64,000 nucleotides of DNA from Thalia democratica (taxonomy: Eukaryota). Position 1 is the stretch's first letter. Every line of letters begins with the position of its first letter. Below the pieces are notes generated by a model. That model saw nothing but the letters and a program-made list of their open reading frames with translations, ran no database searches and was not told the origin of the DNA. Location: NCBI GenBank assembly GCA_965202585.1, contig OZ241826.1:76384001-76448000 (forward strand). Direction: 5' to 3'. This document shows, one piece after another, positions 40,532 to 58,912 of the stretch. Both the position numbers and the translations under genes were made by a program.

Positions 40532-43500
40532 ATGCGAAAATTTACAAAAGGCAAGAGGAAGTCGTTCATGCCTTCCACCTTGACGCCCGAAGAGTTCTTT
40601 GAAAGGCGTAACCGCAAGCGGAAAAAGAAAAGTCGCAATAACGTTGAGTTTAAGCGGCGCAAGACGTTGACAGGTGACAAAGTTCATGTTGAAGAGGGCG
40701 GGTCGAAATTTAGTGGGTCATCGCTGGACGTGAAGCGGATTTTACAAAGTAATGAAGAAGATGACGTTTTTTCGTTTAAACTGCGAGATTCTTGGGACGA
40801 GAAAAGTTTGTTTTTGTTTAACAAGTTTTATTTATTGTAAGTAAAATATTAAAAAAATACATGAAAACGTTAAACTACTTAAGTTTTGTATGCTTTTATA
40901 TGAGTGCACAAAAATAACTTTGAAAAAAAAAGGTTCAAAACTTTGTTTTTTGCTTGTTAACTAAAAATGTTTATTAAAAACGTTTAAACGTAGATAAGCT
41001 TATACATATCAATTGTAATTTAATTTGTACTCTAATGAACTTAAAATAAAACTATTGCGAGTTAATGCTAAAAACTAATTTAATTTTATATAACAGTTGT
41101 GCTACCAAAATCAGTAAAAGAAGGGAAGAGCAGCGTAAAAGGTGAGAACTAAAATTATTAAATACTAGCTTTATACAAACCAACAAAAGTGTTAATAAAA
41201 TAACTGTAATTTCGAATTCAATTAGAAGGAAGCTACTTTGCTTTGGTAAAACTCAAACAAGTCTTTAAACATTTTTTATACTAAAAACTTTTTGCTGTGT
41301 TATTGTTTTTCAGAAAAAAAAAGTTAAGTTTTAAATATATAAGTCACCTATGTTTAAGCCGTTAATTTTTCAAAACATTTTTTTTTGATTTTCCTTTTAC
41401 TATATAAGTATTACTTTTTAAGTATAGTAACCTAAATAAAAGCACAACAAAACTAGCGTTTATAAATACACAACTAATTTTATTTTAATTACCTTTAATA
41501 AATCAAAATTTTAGTTTGTATTTTCTGTAATAACTTAAAGAAATGGTAGTATAACATTTTTTTTTCTCACATACTGAACTTTAAAACAAGATAAACTATT
41601 AAGCTTAGATATTCTAGAAATGATACTGAGTATTTTTTATTAAACAAACCTTTTAAAATTACAGCTTTATCACAACTGCATGCTCAACTTGTAACATTTA
41701 ATGTTGTTTTATATTTTAACTTAAAAGTTTTTGTTGAAAACATAAATTGAAAGCATAAAAAACCCTATATACTTTTTAGAAATACTTTTAAATAACTAAA
41801 GAATGTAAAGCAGTCCTAAGTTAAAAAACAAAACACTTATTTAGGTTTTTTATTATTGTATAATTAGCATTTGCAGTTAAACTATATTCTTGTAACAACA
41901 AGAAAGTGTAGTAGTAAAAAGTAGTTACACTGTAAATTAGTCCTTTTTATTACATGCTAAATACAAGTCCAATTTTGCAAGCTAATTTCTGTAGTATAAT
42001 TTAAGGGTATTGTTGTTCGTATCGTATACTTATAATTACTGATTTTTTTACCTTATAATAAGATAATTATATGAAAAACTGGAACAATTGGTAGTACAAA
42101 AAATATATTTAGCTTTCTGTTATTCTGTATCTTATTACTCATTCCATATTTATCATTAATTTTTCAATTGTACTTTTTATAACCGTTACATTAAAAAAAG
42201 TAAATGACTTTAACCTAAATTAATACCTTTTAAGCTTCTGGTCGTCACGTAATATTTCTTAAAATTAATGCAGCTTAAAATAATGTTTTAAGTATTATGC
42301 TCAGTTGAATAATCAATTACTAGAAAGTAAACTAGTATACAAATTTATACCCCATTTAAAGCTTATAGCGGGTAATCAGAAAAAAAGTTTTATGGTAGCT
42401 GTGAAGTCCAAACAAGTAGTTTATAATTTTTTGTACTAAACATGTACTGTAGTTTAAAAACACTGTTTGTTTATTAAACTATATTTAATTAACATAAGCT
42501 TTTGTTATTTAGCTTAAACAAAAGCATACAACGAGCAAAGTCTAAAGATTGTAAGTTTAGATTTTATAGACAAAATCAATTTTATGTCAAATTGGAATGA
42601 CGTAAATAAATATTTAAATTGTTTACGTTTGTTTGAAAGCTTTTCAGTGCCTAAACTATTTTCTTCAAAAGAATTTCAACTTGTTTATAGTTGTTGTCTG
42701 TTTTGTATTTTACTTGTGTTTGCTTCTAATGTAAATTTCACATAGATAAAGCTTAAGTCGACTACATGTTTAATAAATTAAATTGTGCGTAAGTTAGAGC
42801 AAATTAGCAGTAAAAACAAACGTTTTACAGACAAAACAAGTTCTGAGCAAAAATATACGAAACGGCTAAACTTCACACCGCAATCTTCGACAAGTACTTT
42901 TACAACAGTAAAACCCGTATGTTCAAAACAGCATGTAAAACAAAAAGAAATCAACTTAAAATGGCCGTTGTTAGAACAGGACAGTTTGCAACCACGTCCA
43001 ACGAAAAAAACTCGCTTTAATACAAACAATTTCTTGAACAAGAAAACAGACAGTTCAAGCAGCATAATTGTTGAACAAGCTCAGAAAATACCCGTATCTG
43101 ATAATAAAGAACAGAAAACTGAAGTGCAGTTCACTGAACAACAGGAAAAAGATTTAGATGACCAAATAATACAAAATCAAGATTTTGAGGAATTTATGAA
43201 TGAATATTTCGGTTATCAAAGTAATCAAATACCAATTACAGAACTACAACAACCAAAAATTCAGCAAAAGCAACCAATTAAACAACTACAACAGCCAAAT
43301 AGTCAGCAGTCACAACCAGCTACTCAATTAAAACAGCCAAACAATCAACTACAACCGATCGTTGAACAACGAAAGCCAAAAGCTAAAGTGAAGCAGCAAA
43401 ATAACCAACAGCAACCAAATTTTCTAATAAAAAGTTCACTAAATTGTCAAACAAATCAACCACAGCCAAGACAAACATTTTTTAAAGGTGATTTTTGTTT

Positions 43501-46500
43501 AAATAAAAACTAAAGTTTTTTTTTTTGTTTAATGTTAAACTTAAGTTTTAGTTTAAAATTTAAATACACTTTAACCATTATGAGGTAAATTAAAAAAAAA
43601 AAAAAAAAACACTGAACTCACAGTTATATATCAAATCCAATTATAATTTATCAACTAAAATTTTGGCGTACAAACACTTTTCATATAAAACAAGTCCTAA
43701 ACCGAATAATCTTTTAACATTAAGCTGTAACTATTTTTTATCTTATTTTATAAAATTTTAAATGTTTTTAACATTAATCAGTTACTCTAATTACAGAAAA
43801 ACCTGCATATTCAAAGCAATTTGTAAGAAGAGAAGAAATCAACTTAAAAAGACCTTTGTTAGAAAACGACAACTTGCAAAAACTTCCAATTAAAAAAACT
43901 CGCCTTGATACAACGAATGCCTTGAACAAAAAATCAGACAGCTCAGGAAACATAAATAACAAACAAGTTCAGAAAAAACCCGTACCTGAATGTAAAGAAG
44001 TGGAAGAAAAAAATGATGTGCAGCTCAATGAGCAGCTGGAAAAAGAGTTAGATGATATAATTAAACAAGATCCAGATCTCATGGAAATTATGAATGATTA
44101 TTTTGGTCATCAAAGTGTTAAACGAACAAACACTCGACAACAGCAAAATATTCAACTACAGCCAACAGCTCAACTGAAGAAGCAGCATACTCAAGTGAAA
44201 AATTCGGAATTGAAACTGCAAAATTTTAGTAATGAATTGAAACAACCAAACATTGAACTACAGCCGAACATTGAACAACGAAAGACAAAAGGCGAAATAA
44301 AGCAGCAATCAAATCATCAAATACAGCAAGCGGATAATCAACAGCATCTTCAAAGTCAACTGAATTGTAATAAGCCTCAACAACAAGAAGACCAAACAAT
44401 CCGACAACAGACTAGACAAACAGCTGTTGAAGGTTTTTGTTTGTTTAAAAAAATTAAGAGTTTTTTGAAGTTTAATGTTAAACTTATACTTAATTTTCCA
44501 ATCTAATTTAAGTTTAAGCATTATAAGGCAAATATGCATATGTTTTTTATCTTTATCTAATCATTAACAAAAAAAAGCACTGAACTTTAAATTTTATGTC
44601 ACAGAAATGTACATGTTATTTATAGACTGTTGTTCTAAGCGTACAAACATTTTGACATAAAACTAGTCCTAAACTGAACTAACTTTAAACAATAAACTGT
44701 AAAGTATCTCTATCTCATTTTATAAAGCATACAAACACTTTAAATAAATACTAATAATAACTTTAATATTAATTTCAGAAAAAGGTACATGTTCAAAGCA
44801 ACTTATAAAACAAGAAGGTGTCAACTTAAAAAGACCTTTGTTAGAAAAGGACAACTTGGAAAAGCGTCCAAATAAAAAAATTCGCCTTGATACAGAAAAT
44901 GTCTTGGAAAACGAAGAAAACAGTGCAAGCAACATAAATGTTAAACCTATCGAGAAAGAAACTGTAGGNNNNNNNNNNNNNNNNNNNNNNNNNNNNNNNN
45001 NNNNNNNNNNNNNNNNNNNNNNNNNNNNNNNNNNNNNNNNNNNNNNNNNNNNNNNNNNNNNNNNNNNNCAGAAATATCCAAATATTAAGCAACAACAACC
45101 AGTTACTCAACTACAACAGCCAAATATTCAGCAAAATCAACCAAGTACTCAACTGAAATATCCAAATATTCAGCAACAACAACCAGTTACTCAACTACAA
45201 CAGCCAAATATCCAGCAAAATCAACCAAGTACTCAACAGAAATATCCAAATATTAAGCAACAACAACCAGTTACTCAACTACAACAGCCAAATATCCAGC
45301 AAAATCAACCAAGTACTCAACTGAAATATCCAAATATTCAGCAACAACAACCAGTTACTCAACTACAACAGCAAAACATCCAGCAAAATCAACCAGTTAC
45401 TCAACTACAACAGCAAAATTTTCAGCAAAATCAACCAAATACTCAAATACAACAGCAAAATTTTCAGCAAAATCAACCAAGTACTCAACTGAAATATCCA
45501 AATATTCAGCAACAACAACCAGTTACTCAACTACAACAGCAAAACATCCAGCAAAATCAACCAGTTACTCAACTACAACAGCAAAATTTTCAGCAAAATC
45601 AACCAAATACTCAAATACAACAGCAAAATTTTAAGCAAAATCAACCAAGTACTCAACTGAAATATCCAAATATTCAGCAACAACAACCAGTTACTCAACT
45701 ACAACAGCAAAACATCCAGCAAAATCAACCAGTTACTCAACTGAAGCAGCCAAACTTTAACCAACAACAACCAAGTACTCAACTAAAACAAACAAATGTT
45801 CAACTGCAGCCGAGTGTTCAACAACAAAAGCAAAGAACCCAAGTAAAACCGCTGAACAGTCAAGTACAGCAACCGAACAAGCAAGCAAGTATTCAACATA
45901 AATCTAATGTTTCACTTCAGAATCCACTATATGTTCAACAACAAACAAGCAGTAAGGAAAAAGAACAATTAAACCAACAGACAGGACAAACAGTTGTTAA
46001 AGGTATTTATTTAACTAAAAAGTACAGTAACTTCTATCTTTTAGTATAAAACTTAAGTTTACTAAATTTTAGTAACACATTTTAAATATCATAAGTCAAT
46101 TTATATGTATATATCATTTTGCAATCAAAAATAAACTCAAATACTTAACTAACATGAAATTCTAAATAACAGGTACAAATAAACATATACTCATCTATAA
46201 ACTATTGAGACCTAAGCACATACATACTAATAATATGAACCTAGTATTAAAATGAACTAACTAACTTAAAAAATTCGTTGACATATCTATATAAATATTG
46301 TTCTAAGCAAATAGATGTTTTTAATAATTAACTTTATATTTGTATATTTTGGTATAAACGAACTTTGATATCCTTTTGTTAACAAACATTATTTTGTTGT
46401 GAGCATAAACTTTTTTTAAGACACATACAAATCTTTTCTACAGAATACTTAAGAAAAGTTTCAAAAGTATTAGATAGCGTTTTATATGTTCGACGATCTG

Positions 46501-48123
46501 ACAAGAAAGACTTTGAAGAACTCAAGTTTTCACTAGACCGGACGTACTACAGCATCGAAATTTTAATTAAGGAGCTTGCAGAGTACAAAAACAAATACAG
46601 AGACTTGTTGTTACAAGTGGAAAAAAGTGAGATTCGTTATTTTTGTGATTCATTTCATTCTTTTCGTTTCATAGTTTTCTAAAGAAATTTGAAGCTATTT
46701 ATATTTGATAAACTTATGATTCTGAAAAAAAAAAATTTGGAAGTGAAGTTAATCACTTTTTTATTAAACATTACTATCAAGTATAAATAAATGTTTTAGA
46801 AAATACAGCAAGCAACGCAAAGAGTTCACGTTTTCCTTCAAACAATTCTGTTCGTGTAAACGATGCTCCATCAACAAGCAAGATCAATGTGCACTCTAGG
46901 GCGACCCAAACCACTGTAGCTCAAATCAGAAGCTCGGAGCCAGTTCAGAAAGTAAAAAAGGCGCAACCTCAAAGCATAAGACAACTCTTGCAAAATTCAC
47001 ACCCCAAACAAACTCCCATGTCTGGTAAACACAACCACCTGATTGGTGCAGGAGCGCCGAAAGCCGGATACAGGACGGCCCCGGTTGACAAAGACCTCGG
47101 GTACGCCGCAACCAAATTCCAAAGCAGCACGCCGAGCATACTTGCGGTCCCAGATCCAATATCTTTACCAAATGGGCAAAGTGCTGAAACAAACCTGACC
47201 ACTGGTGCCAACAACCAACAGTTGAACAGTGCCACCAACAACTTACCAACAACTAGCCAAAACAAGCCTGCGGCAAAAATCCCGACTCCGGCACTTGACC
47301 AGGATATTTGTGATGAAATAGACAAAATCATAAACGTGCCTGGTTATGTTCCGACGCTCAACGGTGGAGTTACGATAATTGGTGGAAGTACCAACGGCAA
47401 CGTTGGTCAACTGATAAATGTGAACAGCAGTTTGCCAGGAAGTAGCGATGCAAGTTAGTTTGGTAACGTTGCAAGTTTAACAATATTTTTCTAAACGGAA
47501 CTTTTAGTCGTATTTTTGCTACTTTATTAAAAATAAAACGTTTATTTTACATGCTTACAGTACTTTACTTTTAAATAATTTAACTGTACGTTTTACAATT
47601 TGAATAATAATAAAGTATAAATCCGTTTTTTTTGCCTTAAAAAGATTTTTTTTTAATATAACGACAACCAAACTAAACAATTAACACCGACTGCGGGTTT
47701 CACCAAACAGCAGTGCCTTCACAACAGAACCAGATCGGCGCGGAAACCACTGAGAAGAAGAGAGTGCGAAGGACAAAAGAGGACATCAATATAGCCAGGG
47801 ACGCCGAAATAGCGAGAATCAAGCCTGAAAAGTTTGTCGAAGTCGACGGCATGGACCTGTACTTTTTCACCAGGCAGGAAGCGGTCGAAAGCAAAATCCC
47901 CTTCCCGGCCTATAGGACCTCGTTCACGGCGAAGACCATGGCCATCAAGTTCAAGTCCGACGTGTGGGACAAGCCGGTGGTGACGGCGCTGACGAAGGAG
48001 CAAGTGAGAAGCTGGAAAAGGTTCAAGGCTTTCGTGGCGGAGATCGGCGGCGTCCGTTACTGGTTCGACAACCCGGCCGTTCGCATGCATGAGTGCGCTT
48101 CGGATTTCATCAACTTGGAATAA
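40532..48123 (+). CDS. Uncharacterised, probably nuclear, Gln-rich modular protein of about 1346 aa (7 exons, all introns phase 1)
   Basis: Exons 40532-40805, 42831-43487, 43797-44432, 44779-46002 (contains the 100-N gap), 46444-46626, 46800-47453, 47711-48123; total 4041 nt. Basic N-terminus (RRNRKRKKKSR), three paralogous NLS/Gln-rich exons, a helical/coiled exon (EYLRKVSKVLD..KELAEYKNKYRDLLLQ), a low-complexity exon and a GC3-rich terminal exon. The start ATG is tentative. Confidence 0.75.
44969..45068. other. Assembly gap (exactly 100 N; true size unknown)
   Basis: Run of 100 N abutting the Gln-rich tandem array. Confidence 0.99.
45069..45800 (+). repeat. Coding minisatellite, 36-bp (12-aa) unit, about 20 copies: QQQQPVTQLQQPNI / QQNQPSTQLKYPNI variants
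   Basis: Recurrent CAACCAGTTACTCAACTACAACAGC and CAACCAAGTACTCAACTGAAATATCCAAATATT. The array begins at an assembly gap. Confidence 0.9.
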
Positions 48124-53309: not shown

Positions 53310-53830
53310 ATGTCAAGTTCACTGCAACCAAACACATTTAAACCTGAAGTAGTTGGAAAAAGTACACAAAATCGTGTTCAAATACTTTTTTCGACAATTA
53401 GACTGCAACAAGAACTTGAAGAAACCAGACTGAACGCGTCAACATAGATCAGCGACTACTTGCCAGAAGACAGTTTGTTCCAATGGCAGGCCGCACTTGA
53501 GCGGCCTCGAACAACTTCATATGATAGCTGAATGTTAATATTACATTTAAGTGTTCCTTATATTTATCCTTTTGAGTCACCTAGAGTAATTTTCGGCACC
53601 AAAAAATAACTTTGAAGCATCAGTTTGAATGCCCTGGATGCTAACCGGACACCGTCTATAGCTGTTGAAAAAAAATTAGCTGGTCAATCCAGTCGTTTTT
53701 TATCAATCGCCACCCTGATGACTGTCTTGTGCAAGAAATAGCAGCTCAGAATGTCAACAATCGCGAAGAACACAACAAAATTTGCAGGGGATGGATCAAA
53801 AATTACGCAACAGAAAAAACTGAGTTGTAG
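53310..53830 (+). pseudogene. UBE2D-like: Intronless ubiquitin-conjugating enzyme (UBE2D/E-like E2) pseudogene
   Basis: IRLQQELEE..*..DSLFQWQAALERPRTTSYDS*MLILHLSVPYIYPFESPRVIFGTKK*L*SISLNALDANRTPSIAVEK [frameshift in an A8 run] ISWSIQSFFINRHPDDCLVQEIAAQNVNNREEHNKICRGWIKNYATEK. This aligns motif by motif with UBE2D (RINKEL, DMFHWQATIMGP, YPFKPPKV, SICLDIL, NPDDPLVPEIA, REWTQKYA). It has four in-frame stops, has lost the HPN segment and has Ser at the catalytic Cys position. Confidence 0.85.
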
Positions 53831-55568: not shown

Positions 55569-57452
55569 TTAAATCTGATTTTGAAGAGGTCCGAAAACAA
55601 TGAGATATTCTGGAGTCATTCCGTTGGTGGATACGTAATTGGGTTCTCTGTAGTTACTATTGTTAGACAACAAATTTCCTGAAAAGTTTTGAAAAGATCG
55701 AAAATTGGGATCTTTGACGTTCCCAGTACTACCCTTAACAAGACTGCCATCTATTTTCCTTTTTTTGTTTTGTTTTTCAACTTCTACCTTTTCATTTATT
55801 TTTCTTATTGAAGAGACAAACACAAAGGAATATTGGTTCACAGAATTGTCATGGCTGCAATAATTCAGTCCTTTAAAAAATTCTTGAGTAATGTTAGTAG
55901 TTGCATGCAAAGAACATTTTGATTTGTTAAAAGAGTTGCAACAAATAGTGGGGCATCCAATTTTTCTACAAAGTTTCAGCGTTAAACACTTTTGTTCTGA
56001 ATATCCAAACTGAAGAACTTTCTTTGCTATTGTGGTATCTACACCGTTGAGATAAGCCAGTTTTTTATGTTTTTTAACACTTTTTACGTTTTCACGACTT
56101 TCTATTTTAAAAATGTAACAGATTTTTGAACCTAGCTCATTCTTGGCACCAACAAACGTGTTGAAAACAAACTGATATTCTTCGTCATTTTTATTTAACC
56201 TCTGTGTTCTGTACATATTCTCTTTTGTCTTTTCTGGTTCGTAAAGCCAGTCTCTTTTTAATTTTAGTTGCCGCATGGTTTTTAAAATTCGAAGCTGATA
56301 TTTTAAAATAATCTGGCTCAATTCAACTCGAAGAACGTTATTTGCTAGTACGTTCAACCTTTCTTTAACCATTTCCAGAGTGCAGCCTTCAAAAATAAAT
56401 GGATTGTTTTGTTTTGATAATTCGGTTAACAATTTTTCGAGTTTGTCTTTTGTTCCATTAAAATTACCAGAATTACAATATATGTATTTAAATCTGGTTA
56501 AATAGTAGTTAATTAACCAGTCTAAACCTATATTTTCTTCAAATTCTATCAAATAAGCAGGAGTTACTAAACCGTGGTGTGCCAAAACAACTTTACCTTC
56601 TTTATCACAAAATATACTGTTTTCAACTTCATTACATTCGCTCTCACTTTTATTTTGTTGACAACCTTTTTTAGTTTTTGAGTTGTGACCTAAACTATCT
56701 TTTAAAGCAGATAAATTTGTAAGGTTTATGGTTACAAATTTTGGAATTTTAAACTCTTGCAAAGTGGGTTCAGCTTTCGTGTACTCTTCGAATGTCATTA
56801 TTTTTTCAAGGTTCGACGTTTCGATCCGCTTCACTCGGTTAACAAACAAATACTTCAGCTTCTTAACCACATCACCATCTCTTCCGCAACAGCCGGCGTA
56901 ATCAAGCGCCACTCTGTAGTTGTCCGTGAGGTACAACCCTGGGCCGTAGCAGCCACTAACTGAAGGTTTGAACCCGTGTTCCAATATTCCCATAACATTT
57001 TTTGCTTTTGTGCCATGCAGCAAAAGCTGTTTGGACATTGTTTCGTTTACTTCTGAAACAGTTGGCACAACTTTGAATAACGTAAAGTTTTTATAATCAT
57101 GACTGCAGTTGTTTACAGAACCTTTGTGATTTAAGTGCAGCGACTTTTGCAACAACTTATAAACTTCATCGTTTTTAGTCAACATTTCAAGTTTGTACTT
57201 GAGGTCGTCGGAAAAAGGGATTTTGAATTTCGATGTGTCGTAGAAGTTGTTTAAGTGATCGACCAAATGCTTTACAAGGTTTTTAAAACTTTCGCTACAC
57301 TCGATCAACTGTTTCGCCGTCTTTTTTACTTGTTGTTCGTTTAAGTTGAGCATAAAGGATTTACATGACACATCAGCATATTTACACTTTTTAATTTTGT
57401 TTTCGAACGTTTTATCACTTTCAAAGTTTTCTACGATGGTCTCCATGCTCAA
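55569..57452 (-). CDS. Single-exon protein with tandem PARP/ART-like catalytic domains (domain 1 with H-Y motifs; domain 2 degenerate); first ATG at 57446
   Basis: 627-codon ORF. Domain 1: LLLHGTKAKNVMGILEHGFKPS..GCYGPGLYLTD...ALDYA...VTPAYLIEF. Domain 2 repeats the scaffold: YRTQRLNKNDEEY, IFKIE, YLNGVDTTIAKKVLQFGY, FVFVSSI, MTPEYLIVF. Confidence 0.85.
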   Translation of the reverse strand: MSMETIVENFESDKTFENKIKKCKYADVSCKSFMLNLNEQQVKKTAKQLIECSESFKNLVKHLVDHLNNFYDTSKFKIPFSDDLKYKLEMLTKNDEVYKLLQKSLHLNHKGSVNNCSHDYKNFTLFKVVPTVSEVNETMSKQLLLHGTKAKNVMGILEHGFKPSVSGCYGPGLYLTDNYRVALDYAGCCGRDGDVVKKLKYLFVNRVKRIETSNLEKIMTFEEYTKAEPTLQEFKIPKFVTINLTNLSALKDSLGHNSKTKKGCQQNKSESECNEVENSIFCDKEGKVVLAHHGLVTPAYLIEFEENIGLDWLINYYLTRFKYIYCNSGNFNGTKDKLEKLLTELSKQNNPFIFEGCTLEMVKERLNVLANNVLRVELSQIILKYQLRILKTMRQLKLKRDWLYEPEKTKENMYRTQRLNKNDEEYQFVFNTFVGAKNELGSKICYIFKIESRENVKSVKKHKKLAYLNGVDTTIAKKVLQFGYSEQKCLTLKLCRKIGCPTICCNSFNKSKCSLHATTNITQEFFKGLNYCSHDNSVNQYSFVFVSSIRKINEKVEVEKQNKKRKIDGSLVKGSTGNVKDPNFRSFQNFSGNLLSNNSNYREPNYVSTNGMTPEYLIVFGPLQNQI

Positions 57453-58912
57453 CTACCAGTAAAGGATAGTAAGTTTATTAATAAAGTATTAGCAATGATT
57501 TTATCTATTTGTTTTTAAACAGCTTCACTAGGAAAAAAGTAAATCGTTAATCAACAAATTTAAAGCTTCAAAAGTTTGATAAAAGTTTGTTTTTTACAAG
57601 TGTTACTAGCTAACAAGAATAACTGTTAAACCTTATGTTATAATTTAATAGTTTAATTACTACTGAAACTTTTTTTTAAACAAAACCAATTTATATAATT
57701 ATTAAATATGTAAAAAAATTATACAGCGTTTAGTTGTACCTCTCTACTTAAATAAGCACTATAATTTATAATCATAGAAACAAACAGTTTAAGCATCTCC
57801 AAAGTAGTTTGCGTTTAACTAATCTATCGTTTCATTAAGGAAGTTATTTATTCAGTTTTTGTAACAATACCTTATGACCACTAATTAGTTGTTGTTTGTA
57901 CTCAGTACAAGTATTTGTTATTAATGTAAATGTTTTCGCTGCTGTACAATCAATAACAAACCAACATTTTTTAATGGAGAAATTTTGACAATAAACATGT
58001 TTTAAGCGTTTTTCTATTATTTCTATTTCATAAGTATGGTAAGTATCAGACATGTTAAAAAGCTCTGCTTTGTTTACTCAAGCGTGAAATTACTAACTTA
58101 AAACAAACCAAAAATAAAACACTTCATTGCTGAATTACCATAGTAACTTTTAGCATTTTAACATCTCTGGTAAGTATGTATATAAAATCTTAAAGTACGG
58201 TATGTAGCTTAAAACAAAAACTAAATTTAAAAATATGGATAAAAAACAGCCAAAAGCCCTTTTAAATCTGTTTTAGAATATAATGAAGTTGCATTCATGA
58301 TTTCGTCTGTTAGATTGTCATAAGTAAATTTAAGAAAAAAAAATATTTCACATGTTTTCATCATTTACATACACAATTTGAAATTTAAAAACATGTTTTT
58401 GTTTTGTTAAGTTTCAGTGTAACCTTTAATTACTATATCATTTTTTCTCATAACTAGTTTTAATATAAAAAAGTATATTGTACTTAACATATTCAAACTT
58501 TAACAATACACAAGCATAAGAAATAGCTTTATTCTTGAAAAATAAATTAAAAAAAAGTTTTGCTTATTTAGCAGTGCCTAGAAGTTTTTATTTAAAATAG
58601 ATACCTTTACACCTATTTTACTTTTTGTGGTTGTAAATTTAATTAACACTTATTTAACAACTTATTAAACCATACATATGTTTTATAAAGTAATTGTTTT
58701 ATTAGTGTTTATCTGTTGTTTTGTTTTTTTTCTATTTATCTCCTTGGACCAAAATTGAAATTTCTTTTGTTACAAAACAAAAGTATAAACTTACTAAATA
58801 TAAATAGTGTATTAGAATAACACAATTTCAGCACTAATCATAAATACAATGTTTTAATAAGTAAACATGTATCAAACAAACTCCAAAACTATAAAAAATG
58901 TAAAAAAAATAA

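Follow-up and report, generated by a model that had tools for sequence, protein, structure and literature searches.

An intact single-exon gene of Thalia democratica encoding a PARP-type ADP-ribosyltransferase domain and a putative degenerate duplicate of it

The gene and its PARP-type unit

We analyzed a stretch of 64,000 nucleotides from Thalia democratica (the window; contig OZ241826.1 of GenBank assembly GCA_965202585.1, forward strand, positions 76,384,001 to 76,448,000). Its minus strand carries an intact, single-exon host gene encoding a PARP-type ADP-ribosyltransferase (ART) domain, unit 1, followed by a predicted degenerate version of the same domain, unit 2. An earlier reading of the bare sequence, referred to below as the original prediction, had pointed to an intronless tandem of this kind. 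All coordinates given here are those of the window.

The open reading frame (ORF) listed for the window runs from 57452 to 55569 on the minus strand and gives 627 amino acids when counted from a TTG. The true ATG lies at 57446-57444 and the TAA stop at 55571-55569, so that the complete coding sequence (55569-57446; coding part 55572-57446) comprises 625 codons plus the stop, as supported by the intact frame and by homology over its full length to paralogues and metagenome proteins. The window is very AT-rich, with 20-36% GC in 2-kb bins. At a GC content of about 27% we estimate the probability of a 625-codon frame being open by chance at roughly 1e-24. Only 6 ORFs of at least 150 amino acids are found in all six frames of the window, the second longest having 403, and the base composition of the gene is that of host coding region.

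The 625-residue product begins with a helical region (residues 1-77; 57216-57446, minus strand), which includes a long helix at residues 26-65, is modelled by AlphaFold (AF2) with a predicted local distance difference test score (pLDDT) of about 85-95 and matches no Pfam family. Unit 1 follows at residues 78-306 (56529-57215, minus strand). It is the only part of the protein that matches the Pfam PARP family PF00644 (residues 133-217, E 3.8e-8, 33.5 bits against a cut-off of 26.7). A family profile built from the N-terminal halves of 33 members finds PARP1, PARP3 and PARP15 chains in the PDB at E ~2e-7, and its alignments pair LLLHGT with LLWHGS of PARP1 and GPGVYLT with GKGIYFA of PARP1. Furthermore, the AF2 model of the whole protein (pLDDT 74, predicted template modelling score 0.68) retrieves the ART domains of PARP1/2/3/4 in Foldseek at about E 5e-7. 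The Pfam scan of the 625 residues reveals no accessory domain, as the original prediction had held, and no toxin family beyond a weak ART-PolyVal match (E 0.046).

Unit 1 retains the residues expected of an NAD+-binding PARP domain, and their conservation can be followed in 62 aligned family members. The NAD-binding His motif, H144-G145-T146, is encoded at 57009-57017 (His codon at 57017-57015) and is aligned to the HGS of PARP1; the His is present in 60 of the 62 members and G145 in 61. The GxGxY motif with the first Tyr, GPGLYLT (G168 to T174, with G170 and Y172; 56925-56945), is aligned to GKGIYFA of PARP1, and both G170 and Y172 are found in all 62. The second, nicotinamide-stacking Tyr, Y183 (56898-56900), lies within ALDYAG (residues 180-185), 11 residues after Y172, and is a Tyr in 54 of the 62. 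The position at +8 after Y172 is Ala180, invariant in the family alignment (A1), and the resulting Y-x7-A-x2-Y spacing is common to unit 1, to the fish protein Gig2e discussed below, and to single-unit relatives. The last strand of the unit carries the PxYLI motif P296-A-Y298-L-I-E-F (56541-56561), with the Pro in 60/62 and the Tyr in 59/62, and the same motif is found in canonical PARPs. Between these motifs lies a variable insert (residues 237-277; 56616-56738) that is predicted to be disordered (pLDDT <50) and differs in length across the family. By its profile score above cut-off, its predicted ART fold and its His and two Tyr residues, unit 1 thus falls within the PARP/ARTD superfamily (PF00644, H-Y-E clade).

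The residue that is missing is the catalytic Glu. The segment DKEGKVVLAHHGLVTPAYLIEF (residues 281-302) spans the catalytic strand and the PAYL region, and within it the catalytic-strand region K285-V286-V-L-A289-H290-H291 (56574-56594; strand predicted at 285-289) holds no Glu. Column 285 is Lys in 38 of the 62 members. At column 286, 38 members have Ile, 8 have Val and 3 have Glu; the nearby E283 is shared as Glu by only 9. The register can be set in two ways. In the canonical PARPs P0282, P0280 and P0287, the Pro or Leu of PxYL comes 11 positions after the Glu, and counting 11 back from P296 leads to K285. The nearest Glu-bearing relatives are single-unit proteins of ~220-260 residues with the motif D-E-F-V-A-D-x4-I-P-R-Y-L-I, in which the Glu stands 10 before the Pro and aligns ungapped over V286 in K-V-V-L-A-H-H-G-L-V-T-P. 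Unit 1 and these relatives also have in common an Ala or Cys at -7 and, in one subgroup, a His at -6. The phmmer and hmmsearch local alignments to solved PARPs end before the C-terminal strands, so the register is set by motif spacing. Judged from the aligned sequences, the residue at the catalytic position is K285 or V286 depending on the register, with Glu at neither. The original prediction, which had placed a Lys at the position of PARP1 E988, agrees with the canonical spacing and parts from the ungapped alignment with the Glu-bearing relatives.

In the PARP superfamily, a missing Glu marks mono-ADP-ribosyltransferases (H-Y-I/L) or inactive members, and PARP7/10/11/12/14/15 are active mono-ARTs without it. 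Unit 1 lacks the catalytic Glu in ExxxY...PxYL, placed where the penultimate strand begins, that characterizes the poly-ADP-ribose polymerases of the PARP1/2 and tankyrase type. Directly after the catalytic strand it carries the family-specific motif A289-H290-H291 (56574-56582), whose residues are kept in 54, 56 and 50 of the 62 members, respectively, and which is absent from unit 2.

The second unit

Unit 1 is joined to unit 2 by a second helical region (residues 307-405; 56232-56528, minus strand) with AF2 helices at 308-324, 332-345 and 357-393. Unit 2 itself, a putative degenerate ART or pseudo-ART, occupies residues 406-625 (55572-56231, minus strand) and is supported by hhalign alignment to unit 1 and by modelling it alone. 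When the N halves of the family are compared with the C halves by hhalign, they align over 215 columns with a probability of 99.3% and E 1.2e-20, and the ART parts only, unit 1 against unit 2, align over 181 columns with E 2.7e-21. The match of unit 2 to the single-unit relatives (E 8.4e-16) is weaker than that to unit 1. Unit 2 is therefore closer to unit 1 than to these relatives, which fits an internal duplication. No similarity between the two helical regions is detected by hhalign, and the duplication is demonstrated for the ART parts only.

By sequence, unit 2 has no Pfam match, and a PDB search with its profile is without significant hits (PARP3 at E 0.96). Its fold was examined on a model of residues 311-625 alone (pLDDT 68.5), for which Foldseek returns PARP14, PARP12 and PARP4 at E 2e-5. 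In an exhaustive structural alignment of this model against 48,161 chains, the best 18 are all PARP or pseudo-PARP chains (Z 11.5-7.3), among them PARP4 at Z 11.5, PARP10 at 11.4, PARP16 at 11.3, PARP13 at 10.5, the TASOR pseudo-PARP at 8.6, and the plant proteins SRO1 and RCD1 at 7.8 and 7.7. The next, unrelated chains reach Z 6 and cover only the leading (N-terminal) helices. A search of the AlphaFold DB with the same model gives the same answer, PARP domains.

The motifs of the NAD+ site are lost from unit 2. The His position is N467 in AYLNGV (residues 464-469; codon at 56046-56048), in a column that varies across the family (H 30, N 12, K 6 and Q 4 of 62). GxGxY is absent, and in place of the GxGxY/NAD loop there is a Cys-rich insert with six Cys and a His (residues 487-514; 55905-55988, pLDDT <50); the insert proper covers residues 487-511 (55914-55988), and the longer interval includes the SLH that follows. 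About half of the family has the pattern C-x3-C-x(11-14)-C-x-C at this place, and this spacing of the Cys residues suggests that the loop could be a zinc site. A further insert, rich in Lys, Asn and Ser (residues 551-601; 55644-55796), is also modelled with pLDDT <50 and is longer here than in the paralogues. The AF2 model has no strand ahead of the last one. This last strand, G-M-T-P612-E-Y614-L-I-V-F (residues 609-618; 55593-55622), matches the PAYLIEF of unit 1 and is strongly conserved, with P612 in 61 and Y614 in 62 of the 62 members. Unit 2 thus combines a predicted ART fold, the loss of NAD+-binding and catalytic residues and, as described below, selection at the level of the family, which are the marks of a pseudo-PARP. 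Going by the models and the profile alignments, unit 2 arose from unit 1 by an ancient internal duplication and is predicted to have a PARP fold.

These results uphold much of what the original prediction had read from the letters of the gene. An ART domain and a degenerate ART domain do lie in one intronless chain; every motif quoted for the two units is found in its place; unit 1 keeps His, Tyr and Tyr and is devoid of the catalytic Glu; and unit 2 has Asn for His, no GxGxY and a Cys-rich insert. The fold comparison that it had proposed returns PARPs for the predicted models of the whole protein and of unit 2. The tandem architecture is real as well, and it is not unique to this gene, since it defines a family of at least ~70 copies in the genome.

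Family, selection and surroundings

In order to place the gene among its relatives, we searched the genome (801.8 Mb in 1,833 contigs). The search for two-unit proteins gave 95 matches from 70 scored of 1,003 candidates, i.e. at least ~70 loci with frames of 550-680 amino acids. About three quarters of the scored paralogues are without a stop, and about a quarter carry stops. Two-unit copies are mostly found in arrays, on contigs C7 (52.3-54.4 Mb), C1 (92.8-93.0 Mb), C6 (34.2-35.0 Mb), C9 (43.8-44.2 Mb) and C10. The gene studied here is solitary, there being no other family member in the 64-kb window. In the tree, a small clade from C2 and C6 is its sister group (approximate likelihood-ratio test, SH-aLRT, 98), its terminal branch measures 1.14 changes per site, and its nearest paralogues have 40-43% identity in the genome search and 39% at best in the alignment of the tree. 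Single-unit relatives are more numerous, with over 150 matches (1,148 candidates). They are single-exon genes of ~205-290 amino acids, often arrayed (e.g. C7, 39.5-39.6 Mb), and examples are G000:C1:74977103-74977723 and L039-L041.

Outside the genome, the family profile was compared with 1.84 billion representative proteins and gave 1,100 matches at E <=1e-3, including 105 clusters at E <=1e-30. The sources that were looked up are ocean metagenomes, largely Tara Oceans, and the proteins are unnamed, the sole exception being a four-unit protein of Astyanax. A word-index search with the single-unit profile for named relatives returned only unnamed metagenome proteins. The family is very large and lineage-specific, expanding through tandem duplication in a birth-and-death manner, and the gene studied here is a solitary and divergent member of it. 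In addition, full-model Foldseek alignments to four AlphaFold DB entries (A0A834I2D6, A0A813HQH1, A0A6P8ZTG9 and A0A7S1CMD4) span both units (query 33-625). These entries have 420-600 amino acids, some are named 'Poly [ADP-ribose] polymerase', so that other eukaryotes, as far as predicted models can tell, may also have PARP-like folds in tandem.

Both units are under moderate purifying selection across the family. The ratio of non-synonymous to synonymous substitution rates (dN/dS) in paralogue pairs is 0.25-0.67 overall and mostly 0.4-0.55, and for unit 2 it is 0.27-0.59 in 25 pairs, no higher than for unit 1. This copy itself keeps all family-invariant residues of both units. Compared with four public DNA runs that hold the stretch, all 12 listed indels (of 22 in total) lie outside the frame, and there are 12 listed single-nucleotide polymorphisms within it, 5 synonymous and 7 non-synonymous. 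The closest sequence found outside the genome is a Tara Oceans contig (L038:12-987) whose copy of this gene lineage is 80% identical at the nucleotide level. Two in-frame stops interrupt that copy at its 5' end and a third in the inter-unit helices; to judge from its sequence, it is an orthologue or paralogue that has decayed in a related organism.

The surroundings of the gene offer few landmarks. No convincing ORF or Pfam family adjoins it, and no Rfam family is found. Directly upstream of the start region there is an in-frame TAG stop (57453-57455, minus strand), which is also the end of a pyrimidine-rich tract (57453-57475), 6 nt before the ATG, that resembles a 3' splice or trans-splice acceptor. 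The case for an upstream exon or trans-splice site here is not convincing: such sites precede the ATG in 14 of 24 paralogues and occur in 38% of control windows, an enrichment that is not significant. A shape search of the ESM Atlas returned clusters combining PARP and PARP_reg at a TM score of ~0.3, and on that basis we do not assign the N-terminal helices to a PARP regulatory domain.

About 530 bp upstream of the ATG lies a very high-copy element (57977-58175), with a summed contig depth of ~2e5 against ~100 in its flanks in three samples and with many loose contig ends at 58050, 58066, 58112, 58122 and 58171. It has no second copy in the window or in the flanks of the paralogues, and it matches no Rfam family. 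A second repeated stretch, at 53599-53797, has a depth of ~1,600-2,000 against ~100 nearby. The 403-residue ORF (44838-46049, plus strand) is one of four plus-strand ORFs of at least 150 amino acids in 42785-47458 and shows a weak match to Peptidase_M60 (enhancin-like; E 0.0016, 18.5 bits), below the cut-off of 25.8.

Likely function and relation to known systems

The only named relative among the 1.84 billion representatives is 'GCRV-induced gene 2e' of Astyanax (Gig2e), at E 4.6e-31 summed over its 4 units. Gig2 proteins of fish and amphibians are interferon- or virus-induced PARP-like proteins with 1, 2 or 4 units, and their description reports lineage-specific expansion and virus induction and lists marine-metagenome relatives (PMC3617106). 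The core HGT-x9-GFKPS-x2-G-x2-G-x-GVYL-x6-A-x2-Y is common to Gig2 and to the family described here; both include multi-unit proteins, and both have expanded by lineage-specific tandem duplication. They differ in their units. Those of Gig2 have ~140 residues, every one of them keeps HGT, and they are nearly alike within a protein, so that their duplications are recent; here, in contrast, the units have ~300 residues, the duplication is ancient and unit 2 has degenerated. Beyond the core, hhalign finds no similarity to Gig2e, and for unit 2 it finds none at all.

Unit 1 shares its Pfam family and fold with the mono-ART PARPs (PARP7, 10, 11, 12, 14 and 15; H-Y-I/L), of which PARP15, PARP14, PARP12 and PARP10 are among the best sequence or structure matches of the protein. 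Like them, it keeps His, Tyr and Tyr and may have an aliphatic residue at the position of the Glu. In contrast to their single ART domain combined with WWE, macro, zinc-finger, KH or RRM modules, there are two ART folds and helices only, and the A-H-H motif is specific to this family. None of the 17 human PARPs (PMC10450202) is described as having such a two-unit form. Unit 2, for its part, resembles the inactive folds of the PARP13/ZAP C-terminal domain, PARP9, TASOR and the plant RCD1/SRO proteins, in which NAD+-binding residues are lost and the fold is conserved. Those are single domains in other architectures, whereas in this protein the dead fold follows a live-looking copy of itself in the same chain and has a Cys-rich loop. 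The closest outgroup is formed by the single-unit relatives (E 2.6e-42 with unit 1 by hhalign), which have motifs in common with unit 1, are likewise single-exon and arrayed, and in one subgroup carry [AC]-H after the catalytic strand. They differ in having one unit and no long helices, and many keep the Glu (DEFVAD type), others having His or Tyr.

The nearest parallel in working principle is bacterial. The A components of C2-like binary toxins (VIP2, iota Ia and C2I) contain tandem ART folds that arose by gene duplication, one of which is unable to bind NAD+ (PMC6628389). As in the gene described here, the ART fold is duplicated in one chain; in the toxins, one copy is catalytic and the other took a binding role. 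They belong to the R-S-E clade rather than to H-Y, are bacterial and secreted, and have the dead copy at the N-terminal rather than the C-terminal end. The R-S-E motifs and the dead N-terminal copy of these toxins are absent from our protein, and no sequence relation to them was found. The likeness is one of working principle by analogy, not of membership. The principle of an enzyme in tandem with a dead ART copy is thus already known from C2-like toxins and multi-unit Gig2. The form seen here, an animal ART of the H-Y clade with a C-terminal dead copy and a Cys loop in the pocket, was not found in any named protein.

On this basis we consider it probable that the locus is an intact two-unit gene in which unit 1, if active, is a mono-ART and unit 2 is a non-catalytic duplicate under selection, and that the family may act in defence or stress. 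The 625-residue protein would probably be cytosolic, with helices ahead of each of its two predicted PARP-fold units. Unit 1 keeps H144, G145, Y172 and Y183, from which we infer that it can bind NAD+, and a Val or Lys would stand in for the polymer-forming Glu. Having no Glu at the catalytic position, unit 1 would therefore, if active, be a mono-ART of the H-Y-I/L type and not a polymerase. Unit 2 has lost the His (to Asn), the GxGxY loop and the catalytic strand, and presents a Cys-rich loop, possibly zinc-binding, at the place of NAD+. Since it is under family-wide purifying selection, its most likely role is a non-catalytic one, in which it would serve unit 1 as a scaffold, as a regulator or in target recognition. 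Kinship with Gig2, tandem expansion and a dN/dS near 0.5 point, by analogy, to a role in defence or stress signalling.

Several observations weigh against this interpretation. PARP1 has at the position equivalent to Ala180 a Ser that hydrogen-bonds nicotinamide, and NAD+ binding by unit 1 is not assured because Ala180 replaces it. Both folds are predictions from a 33-sequence alignment, and the Cys loop and the two inserts have low model confidence. The selection estimates were obtained on other members of the family rather than on this long-branch copy, whose own 5:7 ratio of synonymous to non-synonymous changes indicates weak constraint at best, at few sites. The four public runs are all DNA contigs and cover genes and spacers alike. 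The in-frame stops of the Tara Oceans copy imply that the lineage can decay, by the same birth and death as the rest of the family. The kinship with Gig2 is narrow, the hhalign alignment of Gig2e with the family covering 61 core columns only (36% identity, probability 95.6%), and the defence role is an argument from analogy.

Some of these observations feed other explanations. Both units could be catalytically dead, in which case the protein, much like PARP13/ZAP or TASOR, would be purely a scaffold or would read NAD+, ADP-ribose or nucleic acid, and the His and two Tyr of unit 1 would be used for ligand binding or folding only. The missing Glu, the invariant Ala where the nicotinamide-binding Ser is expected, the family-specific A-H-H motif after the strand and the inactive PARP folds among the matches of unit 2 (PARP13 and TASOR) all fit this explanation, which we nevertheless hold to be unlikely: H144, G145, G170 and Y172 are kept in 60-62 of the 62 members, but the same positions of unit 2 are free to vary, as expected of an NAD+-using site, and the Glu-less PARP7/10/11/12/14/15 are active as mono-ARTs. 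A more elaborate scheme, to which we give a rather low probability, is a very large innate-defence or conflict system of PARP-like mono-ARTs, made up of single-unit genes in the hundreds and two-unit genes in the dozens, in which unit 2 with its Cys (zinc) loop replacing the NAD+ pocket would sense a pathogen or mobile-element factor, or act as a decoy for it, and switch on unit 1.

This copy might also be silent or dying, its frame still open but the gene no longer expressed or needed. It stands apart from all other members, on a long terminal branch, and the polymorphism counts, the stops in the related ocean-metagenome copy and in about a quarter of the scored paralogues, and the DNA-only nature of the public runs could be read in the same way. 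We regard this as quite improbable, since a frame of 625 codons at such a GC content is not kept open by chance, the 12 listed indels over three samples are all in the flanks and none is in the frame, and the family-invariant residues of both units are all present. Recent retroposition or a horizontal or viral origin, which the original prediction had read from the lack of introns, seems very improbable indeed. The whole superfamily is single-exon and largely in tandem arrays, so that the intronless state is inherited, and hundreds of single-exon relatives in such arrays speak for duplication at the DNA level. An identity of no more than 40-43% to the nearest paralogues makes this an old copy; no poly(A) tract is seen after the stop and no flank common to the gene and its paralogues is found; and the composition, as noted, is that of the host. 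Some stand-alone PARP-domain clusters of the ESM Atlas are rich in viral members, but their feature scores are at most 0.86, below the meaningful level.

Antiviral defence and stress signalling repeatedly involve PARP-type mono-ADP-ribosyltransferases. If the interpretation we favour is correct, a live-looking ART that shares its chain with a dead but conserved copy of itself provides a natural test of pseudo-enzyme regulation in this fold, for which dozens of diverged two-unit versions exist, some with second units that still keep the His. Should the sensing scheme hold, it would amount to an enzyme/pseudo-enzyme sensor pair of a kind not described for any PARP. For annotation, the value lies in the gene and its hundreds of relatives, which are unnamed in public protein collections. 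Finally, the Gig2-like branch of PARPs, so far made up of virus-induced genes of fish and amphibians, would extend to an invertebrate chordate or other marine animal.

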